NCBI GenBank assembly: GCA_965202585.1
Contig: OZ241826.1
Location: forward strand, 105,090,001 to 105,154,000
Direction: 5' to 3'
From: Thalia democratica
Lineage: Eukaryota
DNA: 64,000 bases
Of the stretch, positions 1-23,600 are shown piece by piece (within the stretch, counting starts at the first letter, position 1; each line of letters begins with the position of its first letter). Under the pieces are notes generated by a model. It worked only from the letters and a program-made list of their open reading frames with translations, ran no database searches and was not told the DNA's origin. Position numbers and translations under genes: made by a program.

Positions 1-1981
1 AAAAATAATTTAAAAAATGTCTTTCAAATCATATTTGTAATGAACAGGTCATTTGGCAACAATAAGCTCAGAAATAAGTTGAGCAGATCTTTTTAAACAA
101 ACATCCTAAAACGCTCGTTTTGCAAAAGTTGCTTACAAGCAAGAACTGCATCAAAATTTTTACTTGATGGTCGGATCTTGACCGCAGTTTGCCAATTTCA
201 AGTTAAAGGTATCAAATATATCACATCTGTTTAACTCCTACATTTACTAAGTGAAACATTCGATAAAGTTATATTAGTAAGTATTGAATTTTCATGTTTA
301 TATAAGTTGCATTTTCAAGAGTCTAGTGACTTCACGATTTCAAAATTCGCACAATTTTTATTTGGAAATTGTACAAATTTTTAATCATAAAAAAGTTTTG
401 TTATTACAATTTCCCATTCATTCAGTGGATTGATTTTAAAGCTACACTCAGGTAGCTAAATAATAAATTAATGAATGTTTAATCCACAGTAGGTCTACCG
501 CATTTGGTCGTCAAAGAGAGGAAGGAGTCTTTGTAAATAGTAGATTAAGAACTTTTAAAAAAATATAACTATACTTTTTTAATAACAATTACTTTGGTGC
601 ACTTAATTTTTATTTAAGAATCTAGTTGTAAATATTATGAGTGCTTTCGTGTTTTTAAAAATTATTTTGAAATTTTGCTACAACTTAGTGACGTCACGCG
701 TTGAAAAATTGCATAAAAATAATTTTGAAAATTAATTAAATATTTTCATCCTGCTATAATTTCTCTTTCTTCAGTCATCCTGTTTAAGGAATGGAATTTG
801 AAGCTACTTAATAGTAGCTATACTATAAACAGTTCGCCATTTAAACTGCGTTAGTGGTTTGAACGGTACTGCTCTGCATTTATTAGGAGAACAGATAATA
901 TTGAGCTTTTTAAAAACAAATATTTAATGCACATTAATTTTCAATATCTAGTTAGTGTTTTTTAAAAGAAGATTAGGGGTAGCACATTTAGTGTATTAGT
1001 TAAATACGATTTATGCAAATCTGACTCATCTATTTAAACTAATTATTTCAGCACTTACCTTCAGCACTACAGTGGTAAACTGCGTACCGTCAAGCAAAAA
1101 TGTCTTTGTACTTATTATGTTGAGAACTACTCGAGCAAATAATATCAAGATTTTTAAATTATACGATGATCTTTATTTAGTTTCAGTATCTAGTTGTACT
1201 TATCAAAAAGGAGTAACATTATGATTATTTTGAATTAACATGAGTAGTGCAGATCTGAGACCTCAAATTAGTTATTTAAGCTCTTTAATTTAAGTTCTTT
1301 AACTATCTTAACTCTACTTCTTCTTCTTTTTAATAACTCGAACTGTTTAGTTACTTTTATTTCAAACTCTGCTTTCTCAAACATATAGTGACGTAATGTA
1401 GTTTTAAATAGCAAAAATATGTTTTAAAGTTTGTATAAACACTAAAATAATCTGTCTCAATTATTACGAACACGATTAAAAATGGGTGTATATTTGAAGC
1501 CACGCCATGTGGCTAATACAATGTTATATTAATTTTTATTTTCAAAATTTTAAAAATTCACATGCTCATCATAAATTAAAAACAACATATTATTAATTAC
1601 TTCCCTTAGCTAAGGTTAAAAAAATAAATTTTATGATTACACCATTAGCCGCCAGTTTTCTTTGGCAAAAATTTCATATTACGAAGCTCTTCAAGTTAAA
1701 AGTTGTTTAGTTTAATGATCTCTATATTAAAATATTTTGATGATATTAATACAGTAAAAAATGTTTTTTATCCAATGCTCTATAACACTGTTAGGCAGCC
1801 TTTTACAGGGTTGCCAAAAAACTTGTAATCCTGAAAAAAACCAGGAATTTGAAAAAAAATTGAAAAAACCTTGATTTTGAACATAATTGTAATAAAGTAG
1901 TCATTTAGATAATAAAACGGTTTGCTTAGAATAAAGTTTTAAATGCATAAGAAATACTGGTTTTGCAGAAGTAGTTTCCAA

Positions 1982-2547
1982 TGTCCGTTTGCAGGGCCTG
2001 GCAGCCACAACGGAACAGATACTGCCTCTGAGTAACTTGAAATCATCTTAAAATACTGTTACTTACAATATTAGGCAATATTAGAATATCAAATATGCAT
2101 ATCAACATAGGGAATATAAATATATGGAATCAATAACAAATACTAATAATAATATGAACATTTAACAGGATCTAACAATTTTAAACAATTATATATAAAT
2201 ACAGATAACTTAAACTACCACTAATATACTAAATAAATCACTAGTATATTTTAAACAACTAATTTTTACTAATTTTTATTATTAAACAAATTAGAAATGT
2301 AAACTTCAATTAAAGATAATAAAGAGAGATAAACAGTATTTACAAGATAGCAGTTCTCTGAAGCCTTAACATATTACTTTCAATACATATAATGTCAACT
2401 CAAGCCCTATCATTCAAATCTGCCATATAAAAAAGTGTCTTCAAAAAAACAACAAAACTTATCCATTGTTACGTAATATCTTTTAATTTTAGCGTTCTTA
2501 GAAATAAATAACTTTTTTGTACTTTTTCGAATAAGCCTAACATTACA
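1982..2547 (-). repeat. 3' LTR of the element
   Basis: Matches 5725-6290 by eye except at 1990, 1993 and 1994. Confidence 0.93.
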
Positions 2548-2559
2548 CTATCTTTCCTT
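2548..2559 (-). promoter_or_regulatory. Polypurine tract (AAGGAAAGATAG)
   Basis: 11 of 12 bases are purines, directly before the 3' LTR on the minus strand. Confidence 0.75.
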
Positions 2560-4346
2560 AAAAGTCTATTTTAGAATTACTGCTAGGATTTTCTAAAACA
2601 TTTCAGGATCAACCAGAAGGTTTAAATTAATAAGAAAAAAAAAAAAAACTTTAAAATGTGTGTTAATCTGGTACACCTTTCAAAATTAAAAAAAAACTCT
2701 AAAGCAACATAAAATTTTGAACTCTCTATACAGCAAACACTTCAAACAAACAAAATCAAAATATGATCACTAGCACCAAAAAAAACAAAAAATATATATT
2801 TATACTAAAAAAAAAAGCATGAAGTGTGTTTAATCATTAAATTGCAAAAGTAAATAAAAAGGAATACATTGCTTTCAAGTACCAAAAATTGAAGTAAGAT
2901 TAAACTCTAAAAAAAAATGAAAGCATAAAAAATTATAATTTACATTTGAAACAAAAATTTTATAACAATTTTAATCCAACAACAAAAAATATGTGGTGCA
3001 GTCAATCAATTTAATTGCAAAGTAAACAAAAATAAATAGGAATACATTGCTGTTATGTACCTAAAAAATTGGAGTAAATTTTAACACTTATTTCAAAAAT
3101 AAAAACTTAAAATATAGAAAATTTGGTATGTTAAATGCAATTAAACAACTAAACTATAATAAAAGATAGTTTCAAGATAATCTTTATTAACACTAAAATC
3201 TCTATTGAAACAGTGAATTTGAATTTAAAACTAAAAAAATATTACTTTACACAAAAATATTAATGAATTGTTATTTACCAATTTTATGTTTCAAAATTTT
3301 AAAGTAACATGTTAGGTGTAAACTCAAAATAAAGAAATTAAAGCATAAAAATTCAGTTTTATACATTTTAATAAAAAAAATAAAATAATTTCAGCAAAAA
3401 AAAAAATAGTAATATCTTTAATTTACAGTGTTAAACTTACAAAATGTCACCAAATCCTTCAGCCAATCAGGATTTCCCAAACGCCATTTCACTGACTCTC
3501 CTCCTCAGATCAGTAACTCGCTGCTGGCTCCAACATTGTTGCTCCTCCACAGGCCATCTCCACGGTCTTAGCCTGATTGTCTCCGGCTGTGCTGATAGTT
3601 TGGAATATTGGACTGCTGCCATCGTTTTGCAGTGGACTGCTTCCTGACAGTTGATGAAATGTGACTGCCACCGTCATCTTGCAGTGGCTATTTGTGACAA
3701 CATGCTGCTCCCTCCTACTGTTGAACTCTTAATGAAATGCAACTGCTACTGTTATTTTTCAGTGGCTGTCAGTGACAACTTTCAACCAGTTGAAGAACTG
3801 CTATTGATAAAACTGTTTAAAAAGAAAACAAAAACAGAAAAAACAAACCCATTGAATCAAAAAACCACAAAAAAGTATATATATACCAGCAGGCCAAAGC
3901 CTACTGCAGAAAAATTGAGAAAAAAAAAAAAAAAAAAAATTCCACCAAAGAATATCTATTCATCTAATTCAGACAACACTCTGAAGAAAATAGGGACTTC
4001 AACAAACTACTATTTACCAACAAAAATACCAAGTGTCTTTTTATGCATTTTATTTTAAATTTATTATCTATTTATTAATCCTTTTTATTTATTAAAATTG
4101 TAGGAAAATGAATGAACTAAAAAAAAAAACACAATAAAACAAGAAACCCCATAGTTAACATAGAAAAATTACTAGTTATTAGAACTATTATATATAACAA
4201 TATAATAATTATTTTTAGTTTGCTAGCAATGTAATATAATACTATTACTGTACTTTAATTTTAGTTAATAATAATAAGAATTAAATAAAGAAGTTACTAG
4301 TTACAATAATTAATGTGCGATCTTCCTAATATTTAATCAGTGTAGA

Positions 4347-5789
4347 TTATTTGTGCCGCCATTTGTGAAAAATGGAGAATGAAGCTTTATTTACATCAGA
4401 TACATCTTTAATTATGTATGGCCATATGTGAAAGGTAAACCAACTTAAATACTTTCTCAGATTTTGCTTTTCAACCATAATTTCAAGATCAGGCTTACTA
4501 ATAACTTTTGCTATAGGTGAAAACTCCTTATCCACCACTTTACTGCATTTTTTTTTTGTGCACGACGCTGAAGTCTCTTTTCTTGGTGAAATTTTTGCCC
4601 TTTGGATGTCACTGTGGTTCCTCTTTGTAGAAATCTTGGACACTGTTTCCTTTCGCAGCTCCTTTGCAATAACAATGTCATTTTCCTTAATTGAACTTCC
4701 AGGTTTAACATTCCTTGGCAAGACCTTTGCCCTCTGGATGTCACTGTGATTCCTCTTTGTAAAACTATTGGACACCGTTTCCTTTGGCAGCTCCTCTGCC
4801 CTAAAAATGTCATTTTCCTTAATTGAACTTCCAGGTTTAACATTCCTTGGCAAGACCTTTGCCCTCTGGATGTCACTGTGATTCCTCTTTGTACAACTAT
4901 TGGACACCGTTTTCTTTGGCAGCTCCTCTGCCCTAAAAATTTCATTTTCCTTAATTGAACTTCTAAGTTTAACATTCCTTGGCAAGACCTTTGCCCTTTG
5001 GATGTCACTGTGGTTCCTCTTTGTACAAATCTTGGACACCGTTTCCTTTGGCAGCTCCTCTGCCCTAAAAATTCCATTTTCCTTAATTGAACTTCCGGGT
5101 TTAACTGATTTCTCATCTGGTACATTGGAAAAATCTAATCTTTTAACTGGCAATAATATTTCTGATATGATTGTTTGGGTAGGTAGGGTTGGTTTTTTGA
5201 TGTGGCAACTGGCGTTTGGGTTTAGCTGTCTGGGGGTGGTCTTAATTATTGAGTAAACAGCTTTAGTGTGAGATGGGTAACCCCCAATCACTCTCCCTCT
5301 CACTGCTGGGAGTGTAGCTTTCAGTCTGTTAACCCTGTTCTTCACCTCCTGAAGCTCCTGATCCAATCTAGCAAGTCGTAGTTGAGATTCAAGTGCCTCT
5401 GCCTCTCGCCTTGCTTTCATGAGCTCACGCATCAACTCAACTTCTTGGTTTTGACGTTCAAACCGTTCCTGCTCACGCCTTGTCTCCTCTCTTTCTAAGA
5501 TAAGTTTTTCTAGTTGCTTCTGCTCCTGCTTTGCCATCTTGATCTCAAATGCCTTCTCATTTACTAATCTTTCAAACTGTTTGCTCCTCTGTTTTGTTCT
5601 CTCAAGATCCCATCCCTGCTCTATTGCTAAAGAAGTGTCTCTTGTAGCTATTTCGTGGTCAGTTGCTAATGGGTTGTCGTGTTCCACAATGACATTGTTG
5701 CCAAGTGTTTGGTACGGGTCACCATGTCCGTTCGCGAGGCCTGGCAGCCACAACGGAACAGATACTGCCTCTGAGTAACTTGAAATCAT
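4347..5789 (-). CDS. LTR-element ORF, 480 aa: coiled-coil N-terminus (possibly gag-derived) plus four 44-aa K-rich repeats
   Basis: Uninterrupted ORF in the element's sense orientation; E/R/Q/L heptad-like stretch at ~aa 60-160. No CCHC knuckle, protease, RT or integrase motif recognised. Confidence 0.7.
   Translation of the reverse strand: MISSYSEAVSVPLWLPGLANGHGDPYQTLGNNVIVEHDNPLATDHEIATRDTSLAIEQGWDLERTKQRSKQFERLVNEKAFEIKMAKQEQKQLEKLILEREETRREQERFERQNQEVELMRELMKARREAEALESQLRLARLDQELQEVKNRVNRLKATLPAVRGRVIGGYPSHTKAVYSIIKTTPRQLNPNASCHIKKPTLPTQTIISEILLPVKRLDFSNVPDEKSVKPGSSIKENGIFRAEELPKETVSKICTKRNHSDIQRAKVLPRNVKLRSSIKENEIFRAEELPKKTVSNSCTKRNHSDIQRAKVLPRNVKPGSSIKENDIFRAEELPKETVSNSFTKRNHSDIQRAKVLPRNVKPGSSIKENDIVIAKELRKETVSKISTKRNHSDIQRAKISPRKETSASCTKKKCSKVVDKEFSPIAKVISKPDLEIMVEKQNLRKYLSWFTFHIWPYIIKDVSDVNKASFSIFHKWRHK
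4590..5105 (-). repeat. 132-bp coding tandem repeat, ~4 copies
   Basis: GGATGTCACTGTG recurs at 4604, 4736, 4868 and 5000. Confidence 0.95.
5711..5724 (-). promoter_or_regulatory. Primer-binding site (TGGTGACCCGTACC), possibly tRNA-Trp
   Basis: Abuts the 5' LTR. The first 9 nt are complementary to the ...GGGUCACCA 3' end of metazoan tRNA-Trp; the match is only 9 nt. Confidence 0.7.
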
Positions 5790-6290
5790 CTTAAAATACT
5801 GTTACTTACAATATTAGGCAATATTAGAATATCAAATATGCATATCAACATAGGGAATATAAATATATGGAATCAATAACAAATACTAATAATAATATGA
5901 ACATTTAACAGGATCTAACAATTTTAAACAATTATATATAAATACAGATAACTTAAACTACCACTAATATACTAAATAAATCACTAGTATATTTTAAACA
6001 ACTAATTTTTACTAATTTTTATTATTAAACAAATTAGAAATGTAAACTTCAATTAAAGATAATAAAGAGAGATAAACAGTATTTACAAGATAGCAGTTCT
6101 CTGAAGCCTTAACATATTACTTTCAATACATATAATGTCAACTCAAGCCCTATCATTCAAATCTGCCATATAAAAAAGTGTCTTCAAAAAAACAACAAAA
6201 CTTATCCATTGTTACGTAATATCTTTTAATTTTAGCGTTCTTAGAAATAAATAACTTTTTTGTACTTTTTCGAATAAGCCTAACATTACA
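5725..6290 (-). repeat. 5' LTR of the element
   Basis: Direct repeat of 1982-2547, followed on the minus strand by a TGG-starting PBS. Confidence 0.93.
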
Positions 6291-9200
6291 CCAAGATAAA
6301 ATTGTATCGAAATTTTTGCTTGATTGAATCTTGATCGCAGTTTGCTGATTCTTAATTAACCGTTTAAAATATATCACATCTGTTGAACTGCTTAATACAA
6401 ACTTAATTAATTAAGTGAAAAGTTCGATATAATAGTTTATATTGAATTTTCGTATTTAATAAAAAGTTGAATTCTGAAGAGTCTAGTGACGTCACTTGTC
6501 AAAACTTGCATACTTTTTTTTTGGAAATTGTACAAATATTTTATCATGTTAAAAATTTGTATTTCACATCCACATCATTTAGTAAATTCAATTTTGTAGC
6601 TACTATTAGACAGCTAAGTCAAAAATTAATGAATGTTCAATCCACAGTAGGTCTAAGGCAAATGGCCCGCCAATAGAGGAGTCTTTGTTAATAGTAGATT
6701 GAGAACTTATAAATAAAATACAACTATACTTTTTATTACAAACAATCACTTAATTTTCATTTAAGAAGTTGTGAATATTATGAGTGTTTTCGTATTTATT
6801 TTAAAATTTTGCAACAGCTTGGTGACGTCACGCGTGGAAAAATTGCATAAAAATAATTTTTGAAAATTATTTAAATTTTTTCATCCTGCTTGAATTTCAT
6901 CTTCGTCAACCATCAGATGTTGAAAGAATGGATTTTGAAGCTATCAAGAGTAGCTATATTATAAACAGTTTGCCATCTAGACTGCGTTAGTATTAAGACG
7001 GAACTGCTCTGCGTTTATTAGGAGAACAGATAATATTGAGCTGTTAAAAACCAATACTTCATGCACATTAATTTTCAATATCTAGTTAGTGTTTTTTAAA
7101 AGAAGATTAGGGGTAGCACATTTAGTGTATTAGTTTAATATGACTTATGCAATTCTGACTCAACTATTTAAACTAATTATCTCAGCACTTACCTTCAGCA
7201 CTACAGTGGTAAACTGCGTACCGTCAAGCAAAAATGTCTCCGTACTTATTATGTTGAGAACTACTCGAGCAAATAATATCAAGATTTTTAAATTATACGA
7301 TGATCTTTGTTTAGTTTCAGTATCTAGTTGTACTTATCAAAAAGGAATAACATTATGATTATTTTGAATTAACATGAGTAGTGCAGATCTGAGACCTCAA
7401 ATTAGTTATTTAAGCTCTTTAATTTAAGTTCTTTAACTATTTTAACTCTACTTCTTCTTCTTTTTTATAACTCGAACTGTTTTAGTTACTTTTATTTTAA
7501 ACTCTGCTTTCTCAAACATATAGTGACGTAATGTAGTTTTTAAATAGCAAAAATATTTTTTAAAGTTTCTATAAACACTAAAATAATCCGTCTCAATTAT
7601 TACGAACACGAATAAAATTGGGAGTATATTTGAAGCCACGCCATGTGGCTAATACAATGTTATACTATTATTTATTTTCAAAGTTTAAAATTCATATGTA
7701 CATCATAAATTAAAAACAACATATTATTAATTACTTCCCTTAGCAAAGGTTAAAAAAATAAATTTCATGATTACACCATTAGCCGCCAGTTTTCTTTGGC
7801 AAAAATTTCCTATTACGAAGCTCTTCAAGTTAAAAGTTGTATAGTTTAATGATCTCTATATTAAAATATTTTGATGATATTAATACCGTAAAAAATGTTT
7901 TTTATCCAATGCTCTATAACACTGTTAGGCAGCCTTTTACAGGGTTGCCAAAAAACTTGTAATCCTGAAAAAACCAGGAATTTGAAAAAAATTGAAAAAA
8001 CCTTGATTTTGAACACAATTGTAATAAAGTAGTCATTTAGATAATAAAACGGTTTGCTTAGAATACAGTTTTAAATGCATAAGAAATACTGGTTTTGCAG
8101 AAGTAGTTTCCAAGATAAAATTGTATCGAAATTTTTGATTGATTGGATCTTGATCGCAGTTTGCTGATTCCTAATTAACCGTTTAAAATGCATCACATCT
8201 GTTGAACTCATGTATTTACTAAGTGAAAAATTCAATATAATAGTTTATATTGAATTTTCGTATTAAATAAAAAGTTGAATTCTGAAGAGTCTAGTGACGT
8301 CACTTGTCAAAACTTGCATAATTTTTTTTGGAAATTGTACAAATATTTTATTATGTTAAATATCTCATCCACATCCACATCATTTAGTAAATTCAATTTT
8401 GTACCTACTTTTAGACAGCTAAGTCAAAAATTAATGAATGCTCAATCCACAGTAGGTCTAAGGCAAATGGACCGCCAATACAGGAGTCTTTGGTAATAGT
8501 AGATTGAGAACTTATAAATAAAATACAACTATACTTTTTATTACAAACAATTGCTTAATTTTCATTTAAGAAGTTGTGAATATTATGAGTGTTTTCGTAT
8601 TTAGTTTAAGATTTTGAACAACTTGGTGACGTCACGAGTGGAAAAATTGCATGAAAATAATTTTGAAAATTAAATAAATATTTTCATCCTGCTAAAATTT
8701 CTCTTTAGTTAGTCATCCTGTTAAAAGAATGGAATCGAAGCTACTTAAGAGTAGCTATACTACTAACGGTTTACCATCTAAACTGCGTTAAATTTAAAAC
8801 GGTACTGCTCTGCATTTATTAGGAGAACAGATAATATTGAGCTTTTTAAAAACCAATACTTTATGCACATTTGTTTTCAATATCTAGTTGTGTTTATTAA
8901 AATAAGATATGGGTAGCACATTGAGTGTATTAGTTTAATATGATTTATGCAAGTCTGACTCAACTATTTAAACTAATTATCTCAGCACTTACCTTCAGCA
9001 ATATATAGTGGTAAACTGTTTATCATCAAGCAAAAATGTCTTTGTACTTATTATGTTGAGAACTACTCGAACAAATAATATCATGATTTTTAAATTATAC
9101 GATGATATTGATTTCACTCCAGTTCCTAGCTTATTAAAAATAATCACATTATGATCTTTTTTAATTGATAATGAGTAGTGCAGATCTGAGACCTAAAATT

Positions 9201-9701
9201 ATTATTTCAGCATTTATCAATAATTTACTAGCAAGCCAAGAGTTTTTTGTATAAATTTTTAAATAGCTGTGCTAATAATTAAAAAGTAACACATAGTTTA
9301 AAATCCAACTTGTATTATAAAGATTGTTTGTGGTCTGGAACAAATTTTTACAATGAAATTTTGTTAAAGTTAATATTTGTTTTATAACAACTTCATTGAT
9401 AAATTATATTATTAAAAACTTAATAAACTAGTTGTTTTAAAAGTCATATAACAAATATCTCTGTATATTGTGTAAAAGTATTAGTTAATAAAGTTAAAAA
9501 TCTCAATTTATAAGCAATTCAGCTAAGGATTCAAGTTTAAAAGATAGTTGCACCATAAGCTGTATTTTTAAACTGCTTTATTTGTATTTAATTCAGTTAT
9601 TTGAACGTAGTTAGTTACTAATTTACCGACAAATAAATTGTTTTAAAGACTTGACCGCCTACAAAAAATTAAGGTAATTATAAACTTATATAGAGTTAGA
9701 G

Positions 9702-10044
9702 CAGGGTTTCCCAAAGTGGGCCATGACAGATACTCAGGGAGCCACGAGCAGCAAAGGGGGAAGAGGGGGCCATGAGCAGTAAAGGAGCCACAGGGCGGCC
9801 ATAACTTGAAACTTACACTAGATATTCTTGAGTTGCAGATGAAGAGCAGAAAAAAAAGGTCTTATGTGTATTTTATGGTAGTTTAGAAACTTACACTAGA
9901 TATTCTTGAGTTGCAGACGAAGAGCAAAAAAAAAAAGTCTTTGGTGTTTTTTATCGTAGTTTATGAGTAATCTTGTTGAAGGGGGCCATTGCTTTTTCAG
10001 TTTCTTTTTAGGGGGCCATTTGCAAAAAAGTTTGGGATACCCTG
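9702..10044. mobile_element. hAT-type MITE
   Basis: TIRs CAGGGTTTCCCAAA / TTTGGGATACCCTG (13/14); 8-bp TSD AGTTAGAG / AGTTTGAG (7/8); homologous empty site at ~12730-12750; internal ~78-bp tandem duplication. Confidence 0.85.
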
Positions 10045-11488
10045 AGTTTGAGTAAGTAGTTTATATACTAACAAAAAAATCCATTTACAATACTTATCAA
10101 GTTATAAGTTGAAAATTAAAACATTGATTAGATAAGATAAATGTATAATAGTAGAGATAAATTTATAGTTTCAGTATAAGTCTATTAAAAGCATAAACAA
10201 ATTAATGTGCTTTTAATTGTGTCTTTGTGTATACTTAAGACAACATAATTACACTATCGTCTTTAACTATCTTAACTATACATCTTCTTTTTTTTCCAAC
10301 TCTTTGATTGTTTAATTTTTTCTGCATCTTTATTTTTTCTAACTCGCAACTGTTTTATTTTCTTTTTTTTCAAACTCTGCTTTCTCAAACATGTTGTGAC
10401 GTAGTGTAGTTTTTAAGCAGCAAAAATATTTTTAAAACTCTGTCTAAATACTCTAACATACACTGTTAAAAATTATCTTTGATGCGATTACGTTAAGGTT
10501 ATAATTAAAGCTGCTCAACGTGGCTAATACAATGTTTTATTATATTTATCTTTACAAATTTAAAAAGCTTATATGTACAAACCAAGCCTAAACCACAAAC
10601 AACATATTAATAATTATTCCACTGTAAGCTAAGGTTGAAATATAGTTTTATGATTACACTGTAAAACTTTTTTTTTGGAAAATTTCTTTATAACGTAGTG
10701 CTTCAAGTTAGAAGTTGTATAGTTTGATGATTTCTACATTAAAATATTTTGATAATCTTAATACAGTGTTTTTTTTTTTACAATGATGAACTATAATACT
10801 GTTATAGGCAGCCTTTTACAGCGTTGCCAAAAAGCCTGAAATACTGGAAAAACCTGGAATTTGAAAAAAAAACTGGAATTAAAACAAAAATCACAAAAAA
10901 CTTGGATTTTTAACATAGTTGTAATGGATTGGTTATTTAGTAACATAATTATTTGCTCATAATTAAGTTGTAAACGTATAAAAAATACTGCATTTTGCAG
11001 AATTATGTTGAACAAATGCAAAGAAATACTTGTTTTTAAAAAGTTGTTTTAAAGATAAAAGTGTCTCGAAATATTTGCTTGATTGGATCTTGATCGCAGT
11101 TCGCTGATTCCTAATTAACCGTTTAAAATACATCACATCTGTTGAACTCATGTATTTCCTAAGTAATACTGAACTAGTATAATTTCAAGAGTATACTAGT
11201 AAAAATTTAATGAATTTATACTAGTATAATTTGAATTTTCGTATTTAATAAAAAGTTGCATTCTGAAGAGTCTATTGACGTCACCATGTAAAAACTAGCA
11301 TAATTATTTTTTTGGAAATTGTACAATTTCTTAAACAACTAATTCGCTTTCCTTTCTTCGCTTCGTACAGTAGATTTATTTTGAAGTTGCATTTATGTAG
11401 CCAAGTATAAAATTATTAAAAGCATGACTACGGTATATGGCGCGCCATGAGAGGAGTCTTAGTAAATAGTAGATTGAGAACTTATTGA

Positions 11489-11805
11489 CAGGGTTGCTTA
11501 AAAACCTGGAATTTTAAACAACTTTTACATTTCTTACTACATTTACAAGAAGAAAAATTTCGGTTTGACACAAAAATATATTGTATTGATAACATTCTTT
11601 CGTCATCATCCATTTTTTTTATTAAAAAAGACACATTTAAAGAAGGTTTAACGTGTTTCTTTAATGTAGGTATACTATTTTACACAGTTTTTTGCCTTAA
11701 ATCTAATTTCAATCTAAAAATAGACCCTAAAACGTGTGATTTTAGAAACTTGGCGGAAATTTTAAAAACCTGGAGAAAATTTGCCGAAAATATTTGGCAA
11801 CCTTG
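11489..11805. mobile_element. MITE of a CAGGGTTGC(CA) TIR family, both ends present
   Basis: CAGGGTTGC...GCAACCTTG inverted ends; absent from the equivalent site in repeat copies 1-3; TSD unclear. Confidence 0.7.
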
Positions 11806-14184
11806 AATTGAAAGCATAAGTACACTTTTTAAATAACAATTACTTTGGTGCACTTAACTTTTGTTTTAGAACCTATTTTGCTTATAAATAATAAGGAATT
11901 TTCATATTTAGTTAAAAATTTTGGACTCTGAACAACTTAGTGACGTCACTTGTGGAACAATTGCATGAAAATATTTCAAAAAATTGTACAATTTTTTCAC
12001 CATACAGCAATTTATGTTCGTCTTCTATCATGTATCCGAAAAACAAATTGGAAGCTACCCAAGAGTAGCTATACAACATACATTTCACTATTTTTACTAA
12101 CGACCCTGCAAGCTTGATGCCATGCATTTATTAAGAGAGCAAATAATATTGAGCTCTTTTAATAACAAGTCTTTTATGTGCTTTAGTTTTCAGTATCTAG
12201 TTGTGCTTATCAAAAAGGAGTAACATTATGATTATTTTGAATTAATATCAATAGTGCAGATCTGTGACCTCAAATTAACTATTTTAGCACTAATCAGATC
12301 TATTACTAACAAGTCAAGAGTTTTTAATTCAGATTTTTTTGTACTAGTAATTCTATCAGAAACTTTATTATTGGTTTAGAGAAAATTTTAACAATGAAAA
12401 GTTTTTTGATTTAAAATGAAGTTTATCACAACTGCATGGATAAAATAAAATTTCAATGGCTAAATAAAGTAGTTTGTTTAAAAGTTATATATCATTTATC
12501 TGTTAGTTTTGTGTAAAAATGTTAATTAAGGAATCAATTTCATTCTTACAGGCACTTTTCTTAAATAAACTAAAAGCATAAATACACCATTAGCTGTATT
12601 GTCAAAATATCGACTGCTTAATGTGGTTATAATTTAAGTATTCTAACGCAGTTTATTACTAAAATACCAAAATATAAACGTTTCTAAAGACTTTAACCGC
12701 AAATTTTTTTTAAGGTGATCATAAACTTACTAAGAGCTAGATGAAGTAGTTTATATTTTACAAAAACGCCATTTATTTTCAAGCTTAAATGAAAAACGAA
12801 AACGTTAATCGTAAAGATAAGTAAATAATTACATTATAAATATTTTAAGAGCATAAGCAACTTAATGCGCTTTTAATTAAATTAAGGTATTTACCTTTGT
12901 GTACATTAATAACAACGTATATACTGCTTTTTAATTATCTTGACTCTACACATGCAATTTTTCCAACATGTTAAATTTTTTTTTTCAAACTGCAGTCTCA
13001 ACTGCAATGTAGTTTTTATGCAGCTAAAACATTTTTTTTTTAAATTGTTCTTTACACATACACGTTCGCTGTAATTAATATTTAATAACGGTTGGTATTT
13101 GAAGCTACTTAATAGGGCTTATACACATTTGAAATATGAATATGATTTATAAAAGTTTACTCTTAAAAATACTTTTAATAACTCTTACGGAAGCAAATAC
13201 GAGTATATTTAAAGCCTCTAATATTGTATTAAATATACTTTAAGTTTCAAGTTTTTTTACGATAATCTAATCTACAACATCAACGAAAAACAATGGATTG
13301 CAAACGTTTCGAAACTTCAAGTTTTAAAAAGACTGTGCTCACACATTCAAACTCTGCAGTCTCGCACGCGCAGTGACGCAACGTAGCTTTTGATTGAGAA
13401 AAGTATTATTTGAAGTTGTACTAAATTTTTATCCCAATAATGCCATTAACTATATATCTGAAGATTAAATTTGGGTTCAATTTAAAGTCACGGTATGTGG
13501 CTAATTTAGACAATAGAATAAGCGTAAATTTTACTTTTAAAAGTTTTATGAAGTAAACGAACTTGAATAATTGTTTTGTCTGTATTTAAAATTGGTAGTT
13601 TTACTATAAATTACAAAACGAAAGTTTTACTATAAATTACAAAACGAAATGAATTTGAAAGAATAAATTCATTATTTCTCCTCAAGTAGTTGAGATCTCT
13701 CTATTTGTTTTCTTAAAACCAAAACATATAATAAATTGGAAAACAGTTAAATTTTTTAAACATTTTAAACCTTTTTTTTTTTGTTTTACTGCGCACATGC
13801 ATTCAAAATCTGCAGTCTCGCACGAACAGTGACGTAATATAGCTTTTGATTGAGAAAAGTGTTATTTGAAGTTGTACGAAAATTTAAGCATGTGCGTACA
13901 GTTAACACAGGTTTTTTCCAAACAGGTTCAAATTTAAAGCCACGATATGTGGCTAGTATTAAATAATTATGTAAACATAAATATTACAAATAAAAAGTTT
14001 AATGAAGCTAACTAATTTAAATAGTTGTGTTCGTATTTAAAGTTGGTGTTTTATACCATAAATTACAGCACTGTTATTAAGTTGTGACATTTTAAAGCAT
14101 TTTTTAATATTATGTTACTTTCGTACCTTTTTCTAATATATTTCCGCAATATAATAAATTTAATTCTCGTTATATCATCTAGTA

Positions 14185-14580
14185 TTCTTCCACAGTTCGT
14201 ATTCGCCAAAACACACGAAGCTGCTTGCTTCAACTAACTTCAGTAAACATACATGAATAAAAATATAATTTAACTAACTTAATACTTTTACAGTATTATT
14301 TTCAGTTTGGACTAAAAACTTCTCGTTATAAACCAACTTATAATATTTATCTTATAACTTTATATTTATTTTACAGTCGGTTTCGCAAAATCACCAAAAA
14401 CTTCTTTTTTTATAATAATTTTTAATATTTTATAACTTTTTATTTTTTTTTAGTTCGGATTCGCGAAAACACCAGAAAGTTCTTGTTTTAAAATCACTTT
14501 GATATTTTGTAAATATTTTACAATTTATTTTATTATTATTTAATTTTCAGTTTGGATTCGCGAAAACACCAGAAACTTCG
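14185..14580 (+). repeat. Tandem copies of acceptor plus exon start (5 copies)
   Basis: Exon-start copies at 14196, 14306, 14377, 14454 and the functional 14551. Confidence 0.85.
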
Positions 14581-14624
14581 TGCTTGTGGGTCGAAGGAGA
14601 TGCCAGCGAAAGTTTTTTCAAAAA
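14551..14624 (+). CDS. SPEN: SPEN-like exon (RRM start, FGFAKTPETSCLWVEG)
   Basis: ttttcag acceptor, gtttgt donor, phase 0/2. Confidence 0.8.
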
Positions 14625-17600
14625 GTTTGTTTTTTTATTTTATTTTTGATAAATTTATGTTTAAAAACTTATTTATAATTATATGTTTCAATAAATTCAA
14701 TTTATGAGTTTTTAGATTGAAAATTATTTTTATGTATTCAAAAAAATTTTCATTCAACATTTTAATATATGCCAGTAAAAGTTTATCTAAAAGTTTGTTT
14801 TTGTTTATTTTCAAATCCCTTTTTTAGTAAATATACTGTTTAAATTAAGAAGTTTCAAAAATTTTTTTTAAATTCAAATAATATTAAGCGCTTTTTTTAG
14901 GTAAGTGAAATTAAAAAAATTAAATATTAATATTTTTCAAAATTGGAGTTCGAAAAGTTAATGTGGTTGATAATTTTTTTGGTGTTTAAATTATTTACTT
15001 TTAATCAATTAAACTCAGAGCTATTTTGTTAACTCTTGCTGAAAGCAAATAAAATCCACTTAATTATTATAGTAATTAAATTTGCATTAGTAAAACAAAA
15101 ATAACTTTTTACAACTGTTTAAGCTACTTCATTCAACATATGGTATAATTTATTTAAAAAAAAATAGTTTAAAATTTGTCATTATTTTCAATTGAATTAA
15201 GGCATCGAACTCATTTACTAAATTTGAGGCTAAAATTTGCAAACAAAAAATAATGGTTCTGCTGTAAGTAATAATAACTGTCTGTAATAATAACTGTGAA
15301 TTAATCATTCTGACTTAAGTTAAAGATATTTAGAAAAATAAGATTAAAATTTTAGTTTTTTTAGTAGTTAAATGATATACTGAAAAGAAAACTTTGTTAA
15401 AAAAGAAATTTTAAAACTAGTACCCGTATTTTCACTCCCCTAGTATAGATAAAATATAATTGGCAAGACAGGTAAGTTAATCAAATATTATATGATATAT
15501 TTAAATAATCTTTTTCACTCAGATTCAGAAAAAATAAGCACAGAAACCTTTTGTTAAAAAATGAATGAATTAAAAAAACATATTATTCACATATTTGGCA
15601 TAATAGGCCCGTTAACTCGCAATGAGAAATTGCGTAAATCATTATTTTATAAATTTGCTGTAAACTACCACTAAATCCATTTTTTTAAAATCAATAAATA
15701 AATGACTTTTAATTGAATTTAAACAAACTTATTCTATTCTATTTCTGATTTTTTTAATTATTGTATTATTTATTGTTTTATATATTATATATTTTACATT
15801 TATTATATTGTATATTTATTAACTCGTTAAATATTAGCCGTTTAACTCGCAATGAGAAGTCGCAATGAGAAGTCGCATAAATCATTAAAATTTAATAATA
15901 TAAATCTGCTGTAAACTATTACTAAATCCATTAATTTTTTTTAAACTCAATAAATAAATTTTTAATTTACCTAAATTTAAACAAACTTGTTAACAGATTC
16001 GGCAAGGTGGGCCCACTGACGCGCAACCAGAAGCTCCACCAATCGCTGGTGTTCTACGACAAATGCGAGCACGCCATTGGCGCGTACAGATCCATCCGGA
16101 ATTCCCCGCACACGAAACTGAAAGTTGACTACGCGGACAGATTTCTGATAAAATATTTCGTTCAGATCATGAAGAGATCCGGTTTGTTATTCGTGTATTA
16201 AATTCTAAATGTAGTTTAATCGTGTTGATTAATATTAAATACTAAGCTGAGTCTAGTGCATATAAGTCTCACAATAAAAAAAAAATCAATCAACATTTTC
16301 ATACTAACCACTAAATAGGTCTGATAAAATAACAACAGAAAGCAGGGTTGCCAAAATATCTGGAATTCTGAAAAAGTCTGTAAAAACCTAAAATTTGAAA
16401 ACTTAAGCAAAAAAAAAAAATAAAAATCTGACATTTAAGCATTAAAAAAAACTATGATAAAACCTGGATTTTTAAACCATTTTCACATGTAAAGTAACAA
16501 AGTTTCGAATAAATACGAAAAATCTATAATATATAAAAGTATAATATAGTATAATTTTATCTCTTAACTAAAAAAGACTATGTTTTAAGTACCTTTACAG
16601 TATTTTTCCAATGTAATTATATTGACAGTTTTTAACCTTAAGTTTTGTTGTATACTAAAAATGGACCAAAAAACTTATTTATTAAAAACCTGAAAGAAGT
16701 TCAGGAACACTAGAAGAAATTTACTAATAAAACTTTGAAGGATAACACATATAAAAAAATCTTTTTATATTATGAATAATACTAAATATGATATTATAAA
16801 CTATTATATTAACCAAATGTTTTTATTTTACTCACCAAATAGATTCAGTAAAATCTTCACTCAAAGGTCTTCTGTCGTACGATGCCGCCAGACTCATGAA
16901 ACTTCTCAATTACCCTAGCAACGAAACCTACTCCCTGGTAACCGAGATCACGCTGGAACCGCCTCCCGTTGCTAAGGAGAAGAAGGAAAAGAGTAAGAAG
17001 GATGAGAAGAAGCGGGAGGGCAGGAAGGAAAAGAAAGATAAAAAAGTATGAGTTTAAATTCGTTTAATATGTTCTTTAATAGCTATAGTACAGAGGAATA
17101 AAATATCTAAAAAGAATAATATAAGGTATAGGAATTATATATATAATAAAAATATAAAGGCATTTAAATATTGACATTATTAATTAAATTACAGTTGATG
17201 TATTAATGTATTAAGTGTTAAACTACTTTTTAAGTTGAACAAATCTCAGAAAATTTTCCACCATGTTTTGAACGTTTTATTAAACCTCAATGTTAAAAGA
17301 AGATTTGATAAAAAAAAAATTGAAGTAATTTGCAATTTTGTAAATCAAGTATTTAACATTAATTTTACAATAAAATTAACAAGTTTGTTAATCATTAACA
17401 ACTTTAATTCTTAATAAAAAAAACAAAATCAACTTTCCACAACTAAGTTACTATCGCATTAAAACATAGTATTTTCAGGATAAACCCAAACGTCTAGTCT
17501 AATTATTAACTTAACATAAAAATATATTAATATATAAAATATATTTAAAAAAATATTGAAATAACTTTATAATTTTCAGGATAAAACCAAACGTCTAGTC

Positions 17601-20600
17601 TAATTATTAACTTAACATAAAAGTATATTAATATATAAAATATATTTAAAAAAATATTAAAATAACTTTATAATTTTCAGGATAAAACCAAACGTCTAGT
17701 CTTATTATTAACTTAACATAAAGATATATTTATATAAAATATTTTTAAAAAAATATTGAAATAACTTTATAATTTTCAGGATAAAACCAAACGTCTAGTC
17801 TAATTATTAACTTAACATAAAAATATATTAATATATAAAATATATTTAAAAAAATATTGAAATAACTTTATAATTTTCAGGATAAAACCAAACGTCTAGT
17901 CTAATTATTAACTTAACATAAAAATATATTAATATATAAAATATATTTAAAAAAATATTGAAATAACTTTATAATTTTCAGGATAAAACCAAACGTCCAC
18001 GCAGCGGCAGCAGAGAGTCGAAATCTGAAAAATCTTCACGGAGACACCAGAGAGAAATTGCACGGTTCGTTCTAGTTAATATTCGTCTTTTTTTTTACAT
18101 AAAAGTTTAAGTGTAAACCACATAAAACAACACTTTTGTCTTAATTTTTGCATAATTTCTATCTGAACCTTAATTAATGTACTTTTATGTTCATTTCATG
18201 CCTTAGTAGTTTTAACCTTCAAACATCCCATAGAATGTAATTTTTGCATCCTAGTTCTAAAACATCGTAAAATTTGTTTCCTCTCCCCCTTATCAATTTA
18301 CTCTTTGATCCATAACCAGTCTTTAGAAAAAGTTATAATGTTTCTTTGTTTCCTCAAAACAATCAGAATATTCTCGCAGGTCGGTAACTCCACCGGGGGG
18401 CGTCTACTTGGAAACGCCGCAGCTCGACGACCCGGTTCCCGTGGAAACCACCGAGGTCACGGATGACGTAATAATGGGAGACGAGACGCCCACTAGGGAC
18501 GAAACTTCCGACCACATAATCAGTGAGTACGTGCCGAGGGGAAGTCAGCAGAAACCGAGGAAGAGTTCACAACATGTTAGTTTGATGATTATTTATATTT
18601 GTTATATTTTAAATAATTAAACTATATTGATAATATTAAATAAATACCTAGAAATTTTTACATAGAAAAGGCATATTAGTGGTTGGCTTTGAATAAATTT
18701 AGATTCCGAAGAAATGAGTTTTTTTATGTTTAAATAAAACTAATGGTAAAATTGTATAAAAGTTTTACGTATATTCTATTTTATAAACAAGTTTATGTTG
18801 AAACATTTAGTATTTAATTCTTTTCAGTCAGTTTTACAAATTCTTTATAAATTTATATAATCTTGTAATCAAAATTCTTCCAGCAGTACGAGGTACCGTT
18901 GTCAAGGAGCCCACTTTTAAGCGACGGTGAGGTCATAGAAGAAGTCGTTACGTCACAGTCGGGCAAGGAGAAAAAGAGCAAGAAGCGCAGGAACAAGGAT
19001 GACGTCATCAGTGACGACAGGAAGAAGCTGAAGCTTGATGACGTCACAACGGTCGATGGCAGGGGAGAAAAGGTTCATCAGTCGGGCGGTAAGAAGAAGA
19101 GAAAGTTCAAGCTGCCTGAGAGTGAAAAGAAGAAAGTTGTTGAAGGTTTATATAACTTTATTTTATTTATTATATTTGAATATATTTAGACTGATGGTTT
19201 GCACAGGGTTGCCAAAAAACTGCAATCCTGGAAAAAACCTGTAATTTTACAATTTAGGCTAGAAAATCCTGGTAAAACCTGAAGTTTAAGAAGTTTCGAA
19301 AAAAACCTTGAATTTTGAACGAAAATCAGTAAAATATTAGATATTATATTTGAACATATTTAGGCTGATGGTTTGTATAAATGTTTGTATTTGATAAACT
19401 GATGTTATATCATAAGTAAATTTTTACCACCAAGCTGTTTTTCATTAATCAAATTTTTCTATTCTTAAGTTTTTTTTATATATTCAAAATAATTAACACT
19501 TTCAAGTGAACTTGGAAATTTTGCATTATTAATTGATAAGTGATCCAAAGTTCACTTGGCTTTGTTGGTATTGCTTGAAAGTTAAGTTGTTAATTTGAGT
19601 TATAAAAACCGTGTCCGCTTAAATTTTTATTTATTGCTCTCAGCAAAGGTACATTTTGTTATTAATTCAAGGCCTGTAAATGATCAAACTTACAGTTGAT
19701 AAATTTCATGAATATTAACACAATTAATGTAAAGCTTTCGAAGCCATTTAGTTTAAGCCAATCAAGTATAACAAAGAAAAACTTTATCTTTGAGTCTTAT
19801 TCAAAAAAAAAAAAACTAAAAAAAATGGACAAACAGTTTTAGCAAACAAAAAAGTGCTTAAAATACTTTAGGTATTTGCCTAGGAAATAACTTATTACCT
19901 TTGCACATTTATTGTAACTGTAAAAACTTAAGTTTTCAAGAAACTCACTGTAGTAGCTTGTTAAAATTGTTTGCTGTTTATAAATATACTAAAGATAAAA
20001 ACTGGAATTATCAGAACTTTTACTGTGTGTTTTATGATTAAATGTTTGTAATGTTTGTTTTACGATTAGATTTATTGTTTGTTTGTTTAACGTGTTTACT
20101 ACTGGTAATATATCACTTTGGTTTCCAGGAATTGTCTCATAAATTTTCATAAAACCAGTCATATATCTGAAAATTAATCGAAGTTTTCAAATTTATTAAA
20201 GTATCTTACAGACTTAAATAAGGGTTGATATTTGTCGTTCTACAGTTTAAACAAATATTAAATATCACTTAAAAAAATTGTAAAGGAAGTACTGATACAC
20301 AGTTATAAGTATTTACAAATACAGTTATAAAAATATAATTATTAGTTTGTTTAAAATTGAAAAGTAACTAAACCATAAAAGTTAAGATACTAGATTGCTC
20401 AATTATCTTATTCAGTACACTCAAATCAAAAACTTAAACATACAAACTTATAAAAGACTTAAAAAACGCTATAAAGCAAAATTTACGTTACTTAAATACT
20501 AGAAAAACAACTATGATTTTGAAATTTACTTTTAATGTATGTAATGTAAAATTGCTGTTTATTTACTAACTAACACTTAACTAAGTTAGTTAATTAAATA

Positions 20601-23600
20601 CTCTTTTACAACTATAACTTCTACTTAATAAGATTTTAAACTGTTTGTAATAAAATTATAAATGTTTTAAATTAATGTCGTTATAAGTTTATTAAAAAAT
20701 AAAATTTACTTTGAATCTTTGTTATTTACTTTACACTCAATGTTAGTTTAAAGTTCTTAGTAAACAATTTATAATTAATAAAAAACAGTTTGATGTTCTT
20801 AAACTGTGTATAAGTATACAAAAAGTTATTTTAAAATCATTAATTGTATTAAAAGTAGCAACTAAAACTGTTACCTAATTTAATAAGTGTTGATAACATT
20901 TTGCATTTTAACTAATTTAGATAACTTTTCATATATAAATACACAAAAAATTAATACAATTTTTTTTTCAGAAAAATCCCCACCTCGGAGCAGCAAAAAG
21001 TCTTCGAAATCACAAAAATCCACGAAAAAACCGGAAACCCTCGAAGCCCACAAAGCGTCTCCTATGACGTCACAACCGCTGAAACCGGTCGACCGCGGCG
21101 AAAAATTCAAACCCGCGAAACCGGGAACCCCTAAAACTAACAAATTAAAATCTCCGGTGGAGCGCGCCAAACCGGTCGAGGAGTCGCTGGAGCGTAAAAC
21201 GTGTCACGTGACCAAAACGAGAGAGGTTTGTAATGCGAGAGAAGCGGAGGAAAGAAGTTTTGAGAAGAAGGCCGCCGGCGATCCTGCAAAGAAGCCGAAA
21301 GGTGAGAAAAAAAGTTGAAAGTTTTTCAGAAAAAAATAAAGTTTTTCAGAAAATGTTTTATTCAGACTTTATGAGTCTTTCGAGCGTAACTATAAATTTG
21401 AGTTAGATATTTTTATTTTAAATTTATTATAAACTATTAAAATAACTTACGTTTTAAAAATTGATGTTTATTAAGTGTTTTTTGATAACAGAAAACCTTA
21501 TTTCATATAGAAAAAATATTTTTTTTTGACAGAGCTTTTATTACCTACATATATATTTTTTTCAGATTCTATAGATTTTTACATTTTAATTATTATTTTG
21601 TATACAATGTTAGCAGTAAGGACGTCTTCATCAGGCCAGCAGCAGAAATTTCAAACAGAAAACAAAATAAACAGTAGAGAGGTTAAAGAAGTTAAAAAGG
21701 AAAATAAAAAAGAACAGCAAGTAAAACAACAACACAGGAAAAATTCCGAATCGAAAAGGTTGGTTTTTTCGATTGTTTTTAATCGGTTGTTTACTGGTTT
21801 TTGTGCTTTTGGTTGGCCGGTAGAGTTGTTGATTTATTTTGAAAACTGTTTGTTACGCTGTTGTTAAGAATTATATTTTTTTTTCCTTTAAAGAAGTGTT
21901 GCAGTTTCGAAAAAAATGTTAATGTGCATAGATTGTAGTAATTTTTTATTAAAACTAAATATATTATATATCAAAAGTAATTTTTAAACATTTTAAACTA
22001 CTTTTTACTTTATTAAGTAAAAGTTCCTATCACTTGTTGTTTGTTTTGATTTGCGTCAATCACTTAACTAGTTGTTCGTTGTTTGAAAAATAACAAAAAC
22101 AAGATTGACAAATTAACTAATTATATGAAACAATGTCAGTGTTATTATTAATTATATAAGTTTTATAATAACTAGAAAGAAAATTTCATATGTTTATGGT
22201 TAGATAGAAACAAGTTGTTTTTAGACAAGTCTTGTTTTAAAACTTAAAACATAGTATTTTGTTTTTGTTCTGTTTTGTTTTTAAGTTGGTTTTTATTCAT
22301 TTGGCAAGTAAGACTAGTTTTCCATTCAAAAAAGTTTGGCAGCTTTGTCTTTTAACTGTTAAAAAGGCAGACTGTTAAATAAATATATAATTTATTTAGC
22401 TGGCTTTGTTAGACATAGCAAAACATTTAAAAATAAGTTAGTTTGTTTTTATATAGTTCATCAAAAAACATTCAAAATCAGCTCTGTTTCTGTTTTTTAA
22501 AATTGTTTTGCCCATATAAAATTATGAAGAAAATCAATTTTCCGTGCAACTTCTAAACAAAAAGTAGAGTTTGAGTTTTTTTCATGGGTTTTTTGGGATA
22601 AATGTTTTGTTATGAAAAAATATATGAATTAAAACAGATATTAAAATTGACAGGTTGGAATTAATATTTTGCCTTTGTTTAAAAATCGTCTAATACGAAG
22701 TTAATAAATAGTAAAAGGTAAAAGAAAATACAATATTTTTTATTAGTTTTTTAAAATCTAAATAAGGAACTTGTTTTGTACAAATTTTCATTTGAATGAA
22801 TTAATATTTAAATAAAACGCTGAGTTTAGGCGAACATTTATGAACAACTACTGGCTTTGGTGAAGGAAATTTTTCTTTATTTGAAGTTCTTTGTTGAGTC
22901 ATAAAGTCGTAATTCGATAAAAGTTTTCTTTTGCTCATGAGTGAAAAAGCTTTGTACGAACTTCTACATAATAATTATTGCAGAAAATAAAGAAATTGAA
23001 TTGTTCTTTGTTTGGTTTTTTCTATAAAATTAAAAATCTAAAAAGCTTGTGTTTTTTTTTATGGCAATAGTTTTTGTAAAAACTTATAATTTGTTAAATA
23101 AAAACTTAAGTAAAATTGTTCTTTGTTAAGTTTTTGATATAAAGCAATCCTGTTTTGTGGCAACGTATAAAAGTTCTAAAGGTTTTCGTACTTGAATTTG
23201 AAAACATGAAATAATTCTTTGTTGAAAAGTTTCATGAAAAAAGTCTTTGAAAGTACTGTATTTTTTGTTTGGCCACAAATATAAAAAATAAACAAAGAGC
23301 ACTTTTATTAAAGATACTTATTTTTAAAATAAAAAGTTCCTTGATAAAACAAGTATAAGAAGCTTTTGTTTGTGGTGCTTGTTGAAAGTTTTAATTTAAT
23401 TTCAGCATCTGAATTAAAGCTGTGATTTTTGAAAAAAAAACTACTTATTAGAAGTTTTAAGTTTATAAAAAAAATTAGTCCAGCCAGGTATAATCAAAAA
23501 ATAAGAAAAGTTTGCAAAATCAAGTTTCACCACAAAAACATTACAATAAGTTTTTCTGGTTATGGTATTGCACAAATGTTTTTACGTAAAATAAATTAAT

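Follow-up and report, generated by a model that had tools for sequence, protein, structure and literature searches.

What does an array of 14 short, similarly built sequence cassettes do in the genome of Thalia democratica? The array occupies positions 326-13954 of the 64-kb stretch analyzed here (assembly GCA_965202585.1, contig OZ241826.1, positions 105,090,001 to 105,154,000 of the forward strand; called the window below). All 14 cassettes lie on the plus strand, and none occurs elsewhere in the window. An original prediction, made from the DNA letters, had read them as a family of ~60-nt Sm-class RNAs with a variable guide. The best reading of the two conserved islands that the cassettes carry at fixed spacing, a promoter-like block and a hairpin, is indeed a family of individually promoted small-RNA-type genes. 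The cluster is real and structured and probably functional, and would represent an undescribed small-RNA-type family; the more specific parts of the prediction, namely the link to U7 RNA, the covariation and the guide, are not established. If transcribed, the cassettes would form a new RNA family of small nuclear RNA (snRNA) type or spliced-leader (SL) type in a poorly studied marine animal.

As judged by sequence comparison, the units have an anatomy that recurs non-randomly, and the promoter block and the hairpin module have been selectively retained across families. From that anatomy we infer transcription and where it starts, as well as the polymerase used, binding by Sm proteins and a possible guide role for a 5' arm. 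The homology between two of the unit types and the conserved blocks downstream of their hairpins, both described below, were not part of the earlier description.

Layout and conserved segments of the array

Three types of unit, A, B and C, recur as A-B-C triplets in a super-repeat of ~1.8 kb. Local G+C content in this region (the first 14 kb) is 24-31%. Hairpins start at 440, 6598, 8403 and 11386 in type A, at 802, 6939, 8739 and 12053 in type B, and at 1498, 7634, 10509, 13486 and 13938 in type C, with a further, broken copy (Cx) at 13103. Types A and B are homologous, and both have TTTTCGTAT ~35-40 nt before the promoter-like box, the box itself, a TTGCAT motif and a downstream block. The super-repeat is interrupted by one long terminal repeat (LTR) element and, in later copies, by abundant repeats resembling miniature inverted-repeat transposable elements (MITEs). 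Identity between super-repeats 1 and 2 is a mosaic, 97% in the spacers versus 60-83% across unit A, so the identity values of individual segments are shaped by gene conversion. The cluster may continue past the start of the window; at the far end, ~200-600 bp separate it from what are probably the first exons of a plus-strand gene.

The shared box GTGACGT(C/A)A occurs 24 times in the window, counting both strands, against 0.29 expected (~80-fold excess). It is exact in nine units and has one mismatch in four: GTGACTTCA in A1, TTGACGTCA in A4, GTGACGTAG in C3 and GTGACGCAA in C5. The predicted distance of 109-117 nt from box to hairpin was found in these 13 of the 14 units. The joint pattern of box, 98-112 nt, AGCYAC, 4-6 nt and GTRGCTA has six matches, with 0.00 expected (none in 100 shuffles). 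In a position profile of ten non-redundant units, conservation runs unbroken from -24 to +58 relative to the box, and past +58 there is none until 10 nt before the hairpin. A TTGTAC-like landmark, which had been placed about 40 nt past the box in general, is present 41-44 nt past it in A1-A4, B4, C5 and C6, but the equivalent position reads TTAATTAA-like in B1-B3 and GTATAAA or CTATAAA in C1/C2.

The individual type A units range from intact to degraded. A1 (326..457) has its degenerate box, TTGTAC at 369 and a perfect hairpin at 440-457. A2 (6486..6615) has the box, TTGTAC at 6528 and a weak stem with four of six pairs on the plus strand, the remaining two being G-U on the minus strand only. 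A3 (8294..8420) is a near copy of A2 with a more degraded stem; the weakness noticed earlier for the stems at 6598 and 8403 is thus real. The most diverged A unit, A4 (11275..11402), has the stem AGTTGC/GTAGCC with five of six pairs, two of them G-U.

Among the type B units, B1 (688..819) combines the box, an octamer-like ATTGCAT, AAUUUGA and a perfect hairpin at 802-819. B2 (6822..6955) has the box and a hairpin with one U-G pair at 6939-6955, B3 (8626..8756) the box and a perfect hairpin preceded by AAUCGA in place of the U-run, and B4 (11940..12070), the most diverged, the box, TTGTAC at 11984 and a perfect hairpin. A partial unit between B and C (1079..1208, also 7213-7342, plus strand) repeats the downstream part of B only.

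Type C begins with C1 (1388..1514), which has the box GTGACGTAA, a TATAAA-like element at ~+46 and the hairpin AGCCAC/GTGGCT at 1498-1514; C2 (7523..7650) is its near copy. The hairpin of C3 (10396..10525) is AGCTGC/GTGGCT with two G-U pairs, that of C5 (13373..13502) is AGTCAC/GTGGCT with one U-G pair, and C6 (13829..13954) has the box GTGACGTAA and a perfect hairpin. The remaining unit, Cx (12992..13120), is probably a dead chimeric copy: it has a C-type upstream region from which the box is deleted, and its B-type hairpin and loop are interrupted by a deletion of 2 nt, in agreement with the earlier remark that the unit without a box also lacks an intact stem. At 13103-13120 of this unit, the C-type upstream region is joined to a hairpin arm and loop identical to those of B1 (AGCTACTTAATAG), which points to recombination or conversion across unit types.

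The hairpin has 6 bp, AGCYAC/GTRGCT, and elsewhere in the 64 kb it has one poor match, at 50922. In 10 of 14 units, every stem position pairs on the plus strand. Loop sequences differ, as do loop lengths (5 or 6 nt), but the arms are preserved, a pattern more in keeping with a folded strand than with a dimeric protein site. Immediately 5' of the stem, where AT(T)TTG/A had been noted earlier, AU3-4G(A) is present in 7 of 14 units. Other reads are AUUUUAA or AUUUAA (A1, C5, C6), AAUUAA (C3), AAUCGA (B3) and AAUUGGA (B4). The only invariant columns outside the box are the base before the stem (A at -1) and one U of the U-run.

To compare segments, each unit was divided into five: the 60 nt preceding the box, the promoter-like segment (0 to +52), the variable stretch (+53 to 22 nt before the hairpin), the hairpin module (42 nt) and the downstream segment (100 nt). 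Between families, identity of the promoter-like segment is 0.62-0.69, or 2.2-3.5 standard deviations over background (random pairs 0.50). The hairpin module, at 0.55-0.60, has a weaker excess over the same background, and the upstream, variable and downstream segments are at background identity. Within families, C5 and C6 are 0.91 identical in the promoter segment, 0.49 in the variable stretch, 0.74 in the hairpin module and 0.71 downstream. The corresponding values are 0.84, 0.55, 0.63 and 0.65 for A2/A4 and 0.81, 0.59, 0.67 and 0.69 for C1/C3; B1/B4 have 0.64 in the variable stretch and 0.66 downstream. The hypervariable segment reported between promoter and hairpin is confirmed by these values, as it falls to background identity in several pairs whose neighbouring segments can be aligned. 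Its length is constant at 35-43 nt.

Recent duplicates (C1/C2 and B1/B3) have no surplus of changes in the variable stretch, and the difference between A2 and A3 there resembles the outcome of a single complex slippage within a CATCCA repeat. No k-mer is common to the variable stretches of all families. A search for their targets in the rest of the window and in the LTR element returned AT-rich 12-15-mers only.

Downstream of the hairpin, all four A units share a 31-nt block (plus strand, 524..554, 6678-6708, 8483-8513 and 11453-11483; 51-67 nt past the hairpin), and all four B units share a 33-nt block (plus strand, 875..907, 7010-7042, 8811-8843 and 12123-12155; 53-56 nt past the hairpin). 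Copies depart from their family pattern at four positions at most (87-97% identity), and the blocks persist in A4 and B4 too, where the surrounding sequence is only 59-66% identical to the other copies. These blocks imply a functional unit of ~330 bp rather than 130 bp. Both can be folded as a stem-loop, and a run of T4-5 follows the block in A1, B1, B3 and B4. The fold of the extended consensus is weak (-4.1 and -11.5 kcal/mol for the A and B families), with hardly any covariation beyond the hairpin.

What the units may produce

The product that we tentatively put first is a 55-75-nt Sm-like RNA that would end at the hairpin. The array would then have arisen by tandem amplification of three paralogous non-coding genes of the snRNA or SL RNA kind, copied together as the ~1.8-kb triplet. 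Each gene would be driven by an 80-bp upstream control block consisting of the box, a half-palindrome of cyclic AMP response element (CRE) type, the octamer-like TTGCAT ~22 nt on, a T-run, and TTGTACAA or a TATA-like element ~43 nt past the box. RNA polymerase II would start ~55-78 nt past the box, either at the conserved TTTT-A-TCA near +58 or ~30 nt past the TATA-like element near +46. The transcript would comprise an unconstrained 5' arm, a U-rich Sm-like site (AUUUGA/AUUUUGA) and, directly after it, the 6-bp terminal hairpin, and the block 51-67 nt downstream could act as a 3'-end formation signal. A U-rich site adjoining a 3' stem-loop is the layout recognised by the SMN/Sm assembly machinery.

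Such an RNA is favoured by the confinement of the units to one co-oriented cluster, by the fixed 109-117-nt spacing and by the presence of only two islands over background. It also explains the U-rich site and why site plus hairpin alone are retained between distant copies. Loops that vary between preserved arms, the one compensatory exchange, the six plus-strand G-U cells, the invariant columns before the stem, the joint loss of box and stem in Cx and the organism-B contigs over most of the cluster also count in its favour. In a spliced-leader-like variant, the GT that every one of the 14 units has 8-21 nt before the hairpin, at a position that depends on the family and with no strong donor consensus, would leave an 'intron half' of 28-38 nt. 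The leader exon of this variant would be the least conserved part of the unit, at background identity, which speaks against it.

Several observations weigh against an RNA that ends at the hairpin. The conserved downstream blocks fit a transcript that starts at the hairpin instead. Between paralogues, whether recent or deep, the hairpin module has been kept no better than its flanks, unlike the promoter block; in all four deep within-family pairs, downstream identity exceeds that of the variable stretch. Covariation of the stem was among the observations of the original prediction. Stem position 4 is indeed T-A in A and B versus C-G in C1, C2, C5 and C6 (T-G in C3), but this exchange, probably a single event, concerns one position only, and when the 3' stem letters were shuffled by column the observed pairing or better was reached in 2504 of 5000 trials, so covariation is not significant. 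The G-U variants, said to pair on the plus strand only, do so in six cells (B2, C3 twice, C5, A4 twice), but three cells pair on the minus strand only (A2/A3 twice, A4 once). Formal support for the helix is thus thin, and the plus-strand call rests mainly on the U-rich AUUUGA/AUUUUGA directly 5' of the stem. The full Sm-site form RAU3-6GR with a purine in front is found in B1 and B2 only, and 5-7 units deviate.

Nor is the box specific to these cassettes. The palindrome TGACGTCA has 19 perfect copies in the 64 kb, and the next CpG-containing 8-mer palindrome has five. Nine copies lie in G+C-rich, exon-like segments (19000, 19039, 21065, 44938, 45161, 45191, 54515, 57602 and 57674), where they are mostly flanked by A...T rather than G...C and mostly read ATGACGTCAT/C; others are at 34541, 44160 and 44274. 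Enrichment in exon-like segments means that the box is neither a dedicated small-RNA promoter mark nor private to the cassettes, but a motif common in this genome.

Sequencing runs gave no support for a discrete RNA. Three runs (X1-X3) have a flat depth of ~40-55 per contig and behave as DNA; X3, labelled as a second organism (B), has 0.19-0.23 of the sampled words in common with the source, and organism-B DNA contigs have at least 95% identity over most of the cluster. Run X6, from the same organism, yielded 47 Mb of contigs that contain 92% of a large exon's words and almost nothing of the cluster, and so behaves as an RNA run, probably of poly(A) type. Its contigs have zero depth on seven of the eight cassette units examined. 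An RNA-type contig (7576-7726, 151 nt, depth 3) overlaps C2 and no other unit; it starts ~2 nt past the TATAAA-like element. It extends 75 nt past the hairpin, and thus looks like background rather than a discrete RNA. Two marine metatranscriptomes cover only repeats within the examined region. Neither they nor X6 contain a discrete transcript of a unit, in data that are poor for 60-nt RNAs: such contigs under-represent non-polyadenylated RNAs of 55-120 nt, and k-31 contigs may miss exons shorter than 31 nt. The cassettes were also considered as alternative first exons of the downstream gene, for which X6 offers neither joints nor depth.

Alternatively, transcription could start at the hairpin (GAAGCYAC...) and the variable stretch could be a length-constrained promoter spacer, an arrangement that we consider less likely but far from negligible. 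Here TTGTACAA and the T-run, at about -67 to -48, would be the proximal sequence element (PSE), and the CRE and octamer-like motifs a close-set enhancer. The product, ~110-125 nt long and either SL-RNA-like or like a novel snRNA, would consist of a 5' hairpin, a linker with a GTT donor-like motif 27-40 nt in, and the 3' stem-loop block. Hypervariability under a length constraint is then explained without guides: a 'hypervariable guide' between promoter and hairpin can be plain spacer from proximal element to start site. In metazoan snRNA genes the PSE ends at about -50, and the promoter block of the cassettes stops ~50 nt before the hairpin, at that usual 3' edge. The excess of downstream over variable-stretch identity (B1/B4 0.66/0.64, A2/A4 0.65/0.55, C1/C3 0.69/0.59, C5/C6 0.71/0.49) also speaks for this start, as do the foldable, 87-97% conserved blocks and the T4-5 runs after four of them. 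A transcript starting in this way leaves unexplained the U-run and the A at -1, which are the best-kept positions before the hairpin, and downstream of the hairpin there is no conservation between C1-3 and C5-6 or between families.

Family-specific GTT motifs follow the hairpin (GTTCGC, GTTTGC and GTTTAC in B1-B3; GTTTAA and GTTCAA in A1 and A2; GTTATA and GTTTTA in C1-C3) and resemble the GTT-type donors at the inferred exon ends of the neighbouring gene. Most units have a GT 27-40 nt from the hairpin start, with no strong donor consensus, but it is lost in A3 and B4. The start GAAGCU/GAAGCC resembles the invariant start GGAAGCU/GGAAGCC of chaetognath leaders (PMC2481426, Table 3), a likeness of six letters that is a lead only. 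Only the first ~20 nt of the would-be leader are common to the copies. No chaetognath SL sequence is found in the window, no Rfam SL family matches, and X6 has no high-depth short contigs of SL type on the hairpin-plus-30-nt segments, although exons shorter than 31 nt could escape k-31 contigs.

It is also conceivable, though we think it unlikely, that no small RNA is made. The units would then be DNA-level regulatory modules, each a CRE/octamer promoter or enhancer with a palindromic protein site, or a decaying amplified repeat upstream of the gene that starts near 14.2-14.6 kb, with their similarity owed to shared ancestry and to gene conversion in patches. The promoter-like block far exceeds all other parts in conservation, the hairpin module evolves like its flanks, and the mosaic of 97% identity in spacers and 60-83% across unit A is what conversion tracts typically leave. 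Of the 14 stems, four are damaged, covariation is not significant, RNA support is lacking, and every unit is oriented towards the downstream gene. However, A/B and C are randomised relative to each other save for two islands at fixed spacing, an outcome not expected from neutral decay. A dimeric protein site needs fixed spacing, and here the arms are kept while the loops vary. The loss of the box and the loss of the stem also coincide in Cx.

More improbable still is that the variable stretch itself is the product, with the units serving as mini-genes for very short regulatory RNAs like those encoded by nematode 21U PIWI-interacting RNA (piRNA) genes. The promoter block would fix the start, the U-run and hairpin would be a pause, termination or processing signal rather than a ribonucleoprotein (RNP) scaffold, and the cluster would be one branch of genome-wide promoter-variable-palindrome arrays. 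The low identity of the variable stretch beside alignable neighbours (0.49 versus 0.91 and 0.74 in C5/C6; 0.55 in A2/A4; 0.59 in C1/C3) and its steady length of 35-43 nt would suit such genes. Just 14 units of three types in a fixed triplet suggest three defined products, not a bank of diversity; moreover, the recent duplicates C1/C2 and B1/B3 have no surplus change in the variable stretch, and the variable stretches have no complementarity to the LTR element or to other repeats in the window.

We likewise give little credence to the combination of a constant Sm-site-plus-hairpin scaffold with fast-diversifying guide 5' arms, as a branch of a genome-wide system of RNA-guided regulation or defence encoded by hundreds of mini-genes. 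Were such a guide RNP real, it would be an RNA-guided layer undescribed in animals outside nematode piRNAs. A U7-like guide is possible, and none of the tests run favours it. Two further candidates were rejected by eye: hammerhead ribozymes, since the CUGANGA...GAAA cores are incomplete, and type-3 genes of RNA polymerase III, since T-runs after the hairpins are inconsistent and a T4 lies inside the U-rich site.

Surroundings of the array

The LTR element (1982..6290, minus strand) lies at the junction of super-repeats 1 and 2 and is outside the cassette family. Its 300-nt ends (1981-2280 and 5724-6023) are 99% identical. It contains one minus-strand open reading frame (ORF) of 480 aa with three internal repeats of 132 nt and no Pfam domain, whose closest relatives are ENA proteins at 81% identity. 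Protein matches of this ORF and of two large exons are marine Tara sequences and genomic metagenome contigs, with no complementary DNAs among them. The organism, a marine one, is represented in Tara Oceans metagenome assemblies.

Abundant short repeats are found at 1800-1870, 7930-8000, 9700-10050, 10820-10900, 11490-11800, 13520-13900, 16340-16480 and 19205-19290. One family contains GGGTTGCCAAAAAAC. Their summed depth in DNA runs is 10^4-10^5 and reaches 4x10^5, and they are present in marine metatranscriptome contigs too.

The plus-strand gene downstream of the cluster (14600-21900) encodes a lysine- and glutamate-rich protein with a weak match to DUF382 (SF3B2-type) at 21526-21867. If that match is correct, a gene for a spliceosome component lies directly downstream of the cluster, which may be coincidence. 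At 17460-17990, a 3' splice site together with the opening 16-20 nt of the exon after it is repeated six times as a 'decoy' with a period of ~118 nt, and the series ends in the real exon (ttttcag|GATAAAACCAAACGTC...). Another four decoy copies, more diverged, precede the probable first coding exon at 14150-14620 (ATG near 14596). The inferred exon ends at 16186, 17047, 18065, 18577 and 19145 are followed by GTTTGT, GTATGA, GTTCGT, GTTAGT and GTTTAT. Four of these five donors have T at intron position +3, an uncommon base there in animals; the exon boundaries were placed by G+C content and open frames.

Comparison with known RNA families

The original prediction recognised no known family in the cassettes, and Rfam agrees: there is no relevant match (U7, SL, SmY, U4 or small nucleolar RNA), either in the window at the gathering score or in positions 1-15000 at E<=10. 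A scan for transfer RNAs found none. Searches of the window for known leaders (the 3' part of Hydra SL-B, the Ciona 16-mer and chaetognath SL patterns) gave chance-level matches only. The box-spacer-hairpin pattern has 11 matches in Joint Genome Institute (JGI) metagenome contigs, which are GC-richer and unrelated and were dismissed as chance.

Sm-class snRNA genes are transcribed by RNA polymerase II from a PSE at about -55 and an octamer/CRE enhancer, and are followed by a 3' box. The cassettes resemble them as tandem small genes, each with its own compact control block, octamer-like and CRE motifs and a U-rich site adjoining a short stem-loop; their TCAC...AAAA is loosely like the vertebrate PSE. 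They differ in that the enhancer-like motifs lie within ~110 nt rather than ~220 nt, the full RAU3-6GR occurs in two units only, and the conserved blocks, 51-67 nt past the hairpin, are farther away than a classical 3' box. Small, non-spliceosomal members of the class include the HSURs of herpesvirus saimiri and the nematode SmY RNAs (in part, bioRxiv 10.1101/857334).

The cassettes are not U7 genes, given the lack of an Rfam U7 match, a Sm-like site that is not of the AAUUUGUCUAG type, the absence of a shared anti-histone motif next to that site and the absence of a histone gene from the window. A 55-75-nt RNA would be similar to U7 in size, in its free 5' arm, in the AAUUUG of B1 and in the hairpin directly after it. 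Unlike U7, the cassettes have no UCUAG-type second half, and AAUUUG is followed by AAGCUAC, which is the stem. The hairpin, at 6 bp, is much shorter, the 5' arm is 35-50 nt long, and there are 14 divergent copies in three types. CUCUUU is present in B1 and B3 only, ~30 nt from the site.

Spliced-leader exons are normally the most conserved part of their RNAs. The would-be exon of the cassettes is the least conserved part if the hairpin comes last, there is no consistent donor consensus and known SL sequences are absent; a spliced-leader use of the cassettes is unsupported. The likeness lies in tandem, tiny genes and in a GT followed by a U-rich site and hairpin, with 28-38 nt against the 30-nt intron half of the 46-nt Ciona SL RNA (PMC7986045). 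Hydra SL RNAs (SL-B to SL-G) have sites of the AAUUUUGA type (PMC7986045), and chaetognath SLs are diverse apart from their invariant 5' start (PMC2481426, Table 3).

The last comparison is with the 21U genes of Caenorhabditis elegans. Type I 21U mini-genes have a Ruby-type motif ~40 nt before a 21-nt small RNA that starts with U. The upstream block of the cassettes (CRE, TTGCAT, TTGTACAA) is no Ruby-type motif, the variable part is longer and is followed by a hairpin, and there are only three types. In both systems, co-oriented units carry a conserved motif that lies a set distance upstream of freely varying sequence, with a promoter logic of snRNA type.

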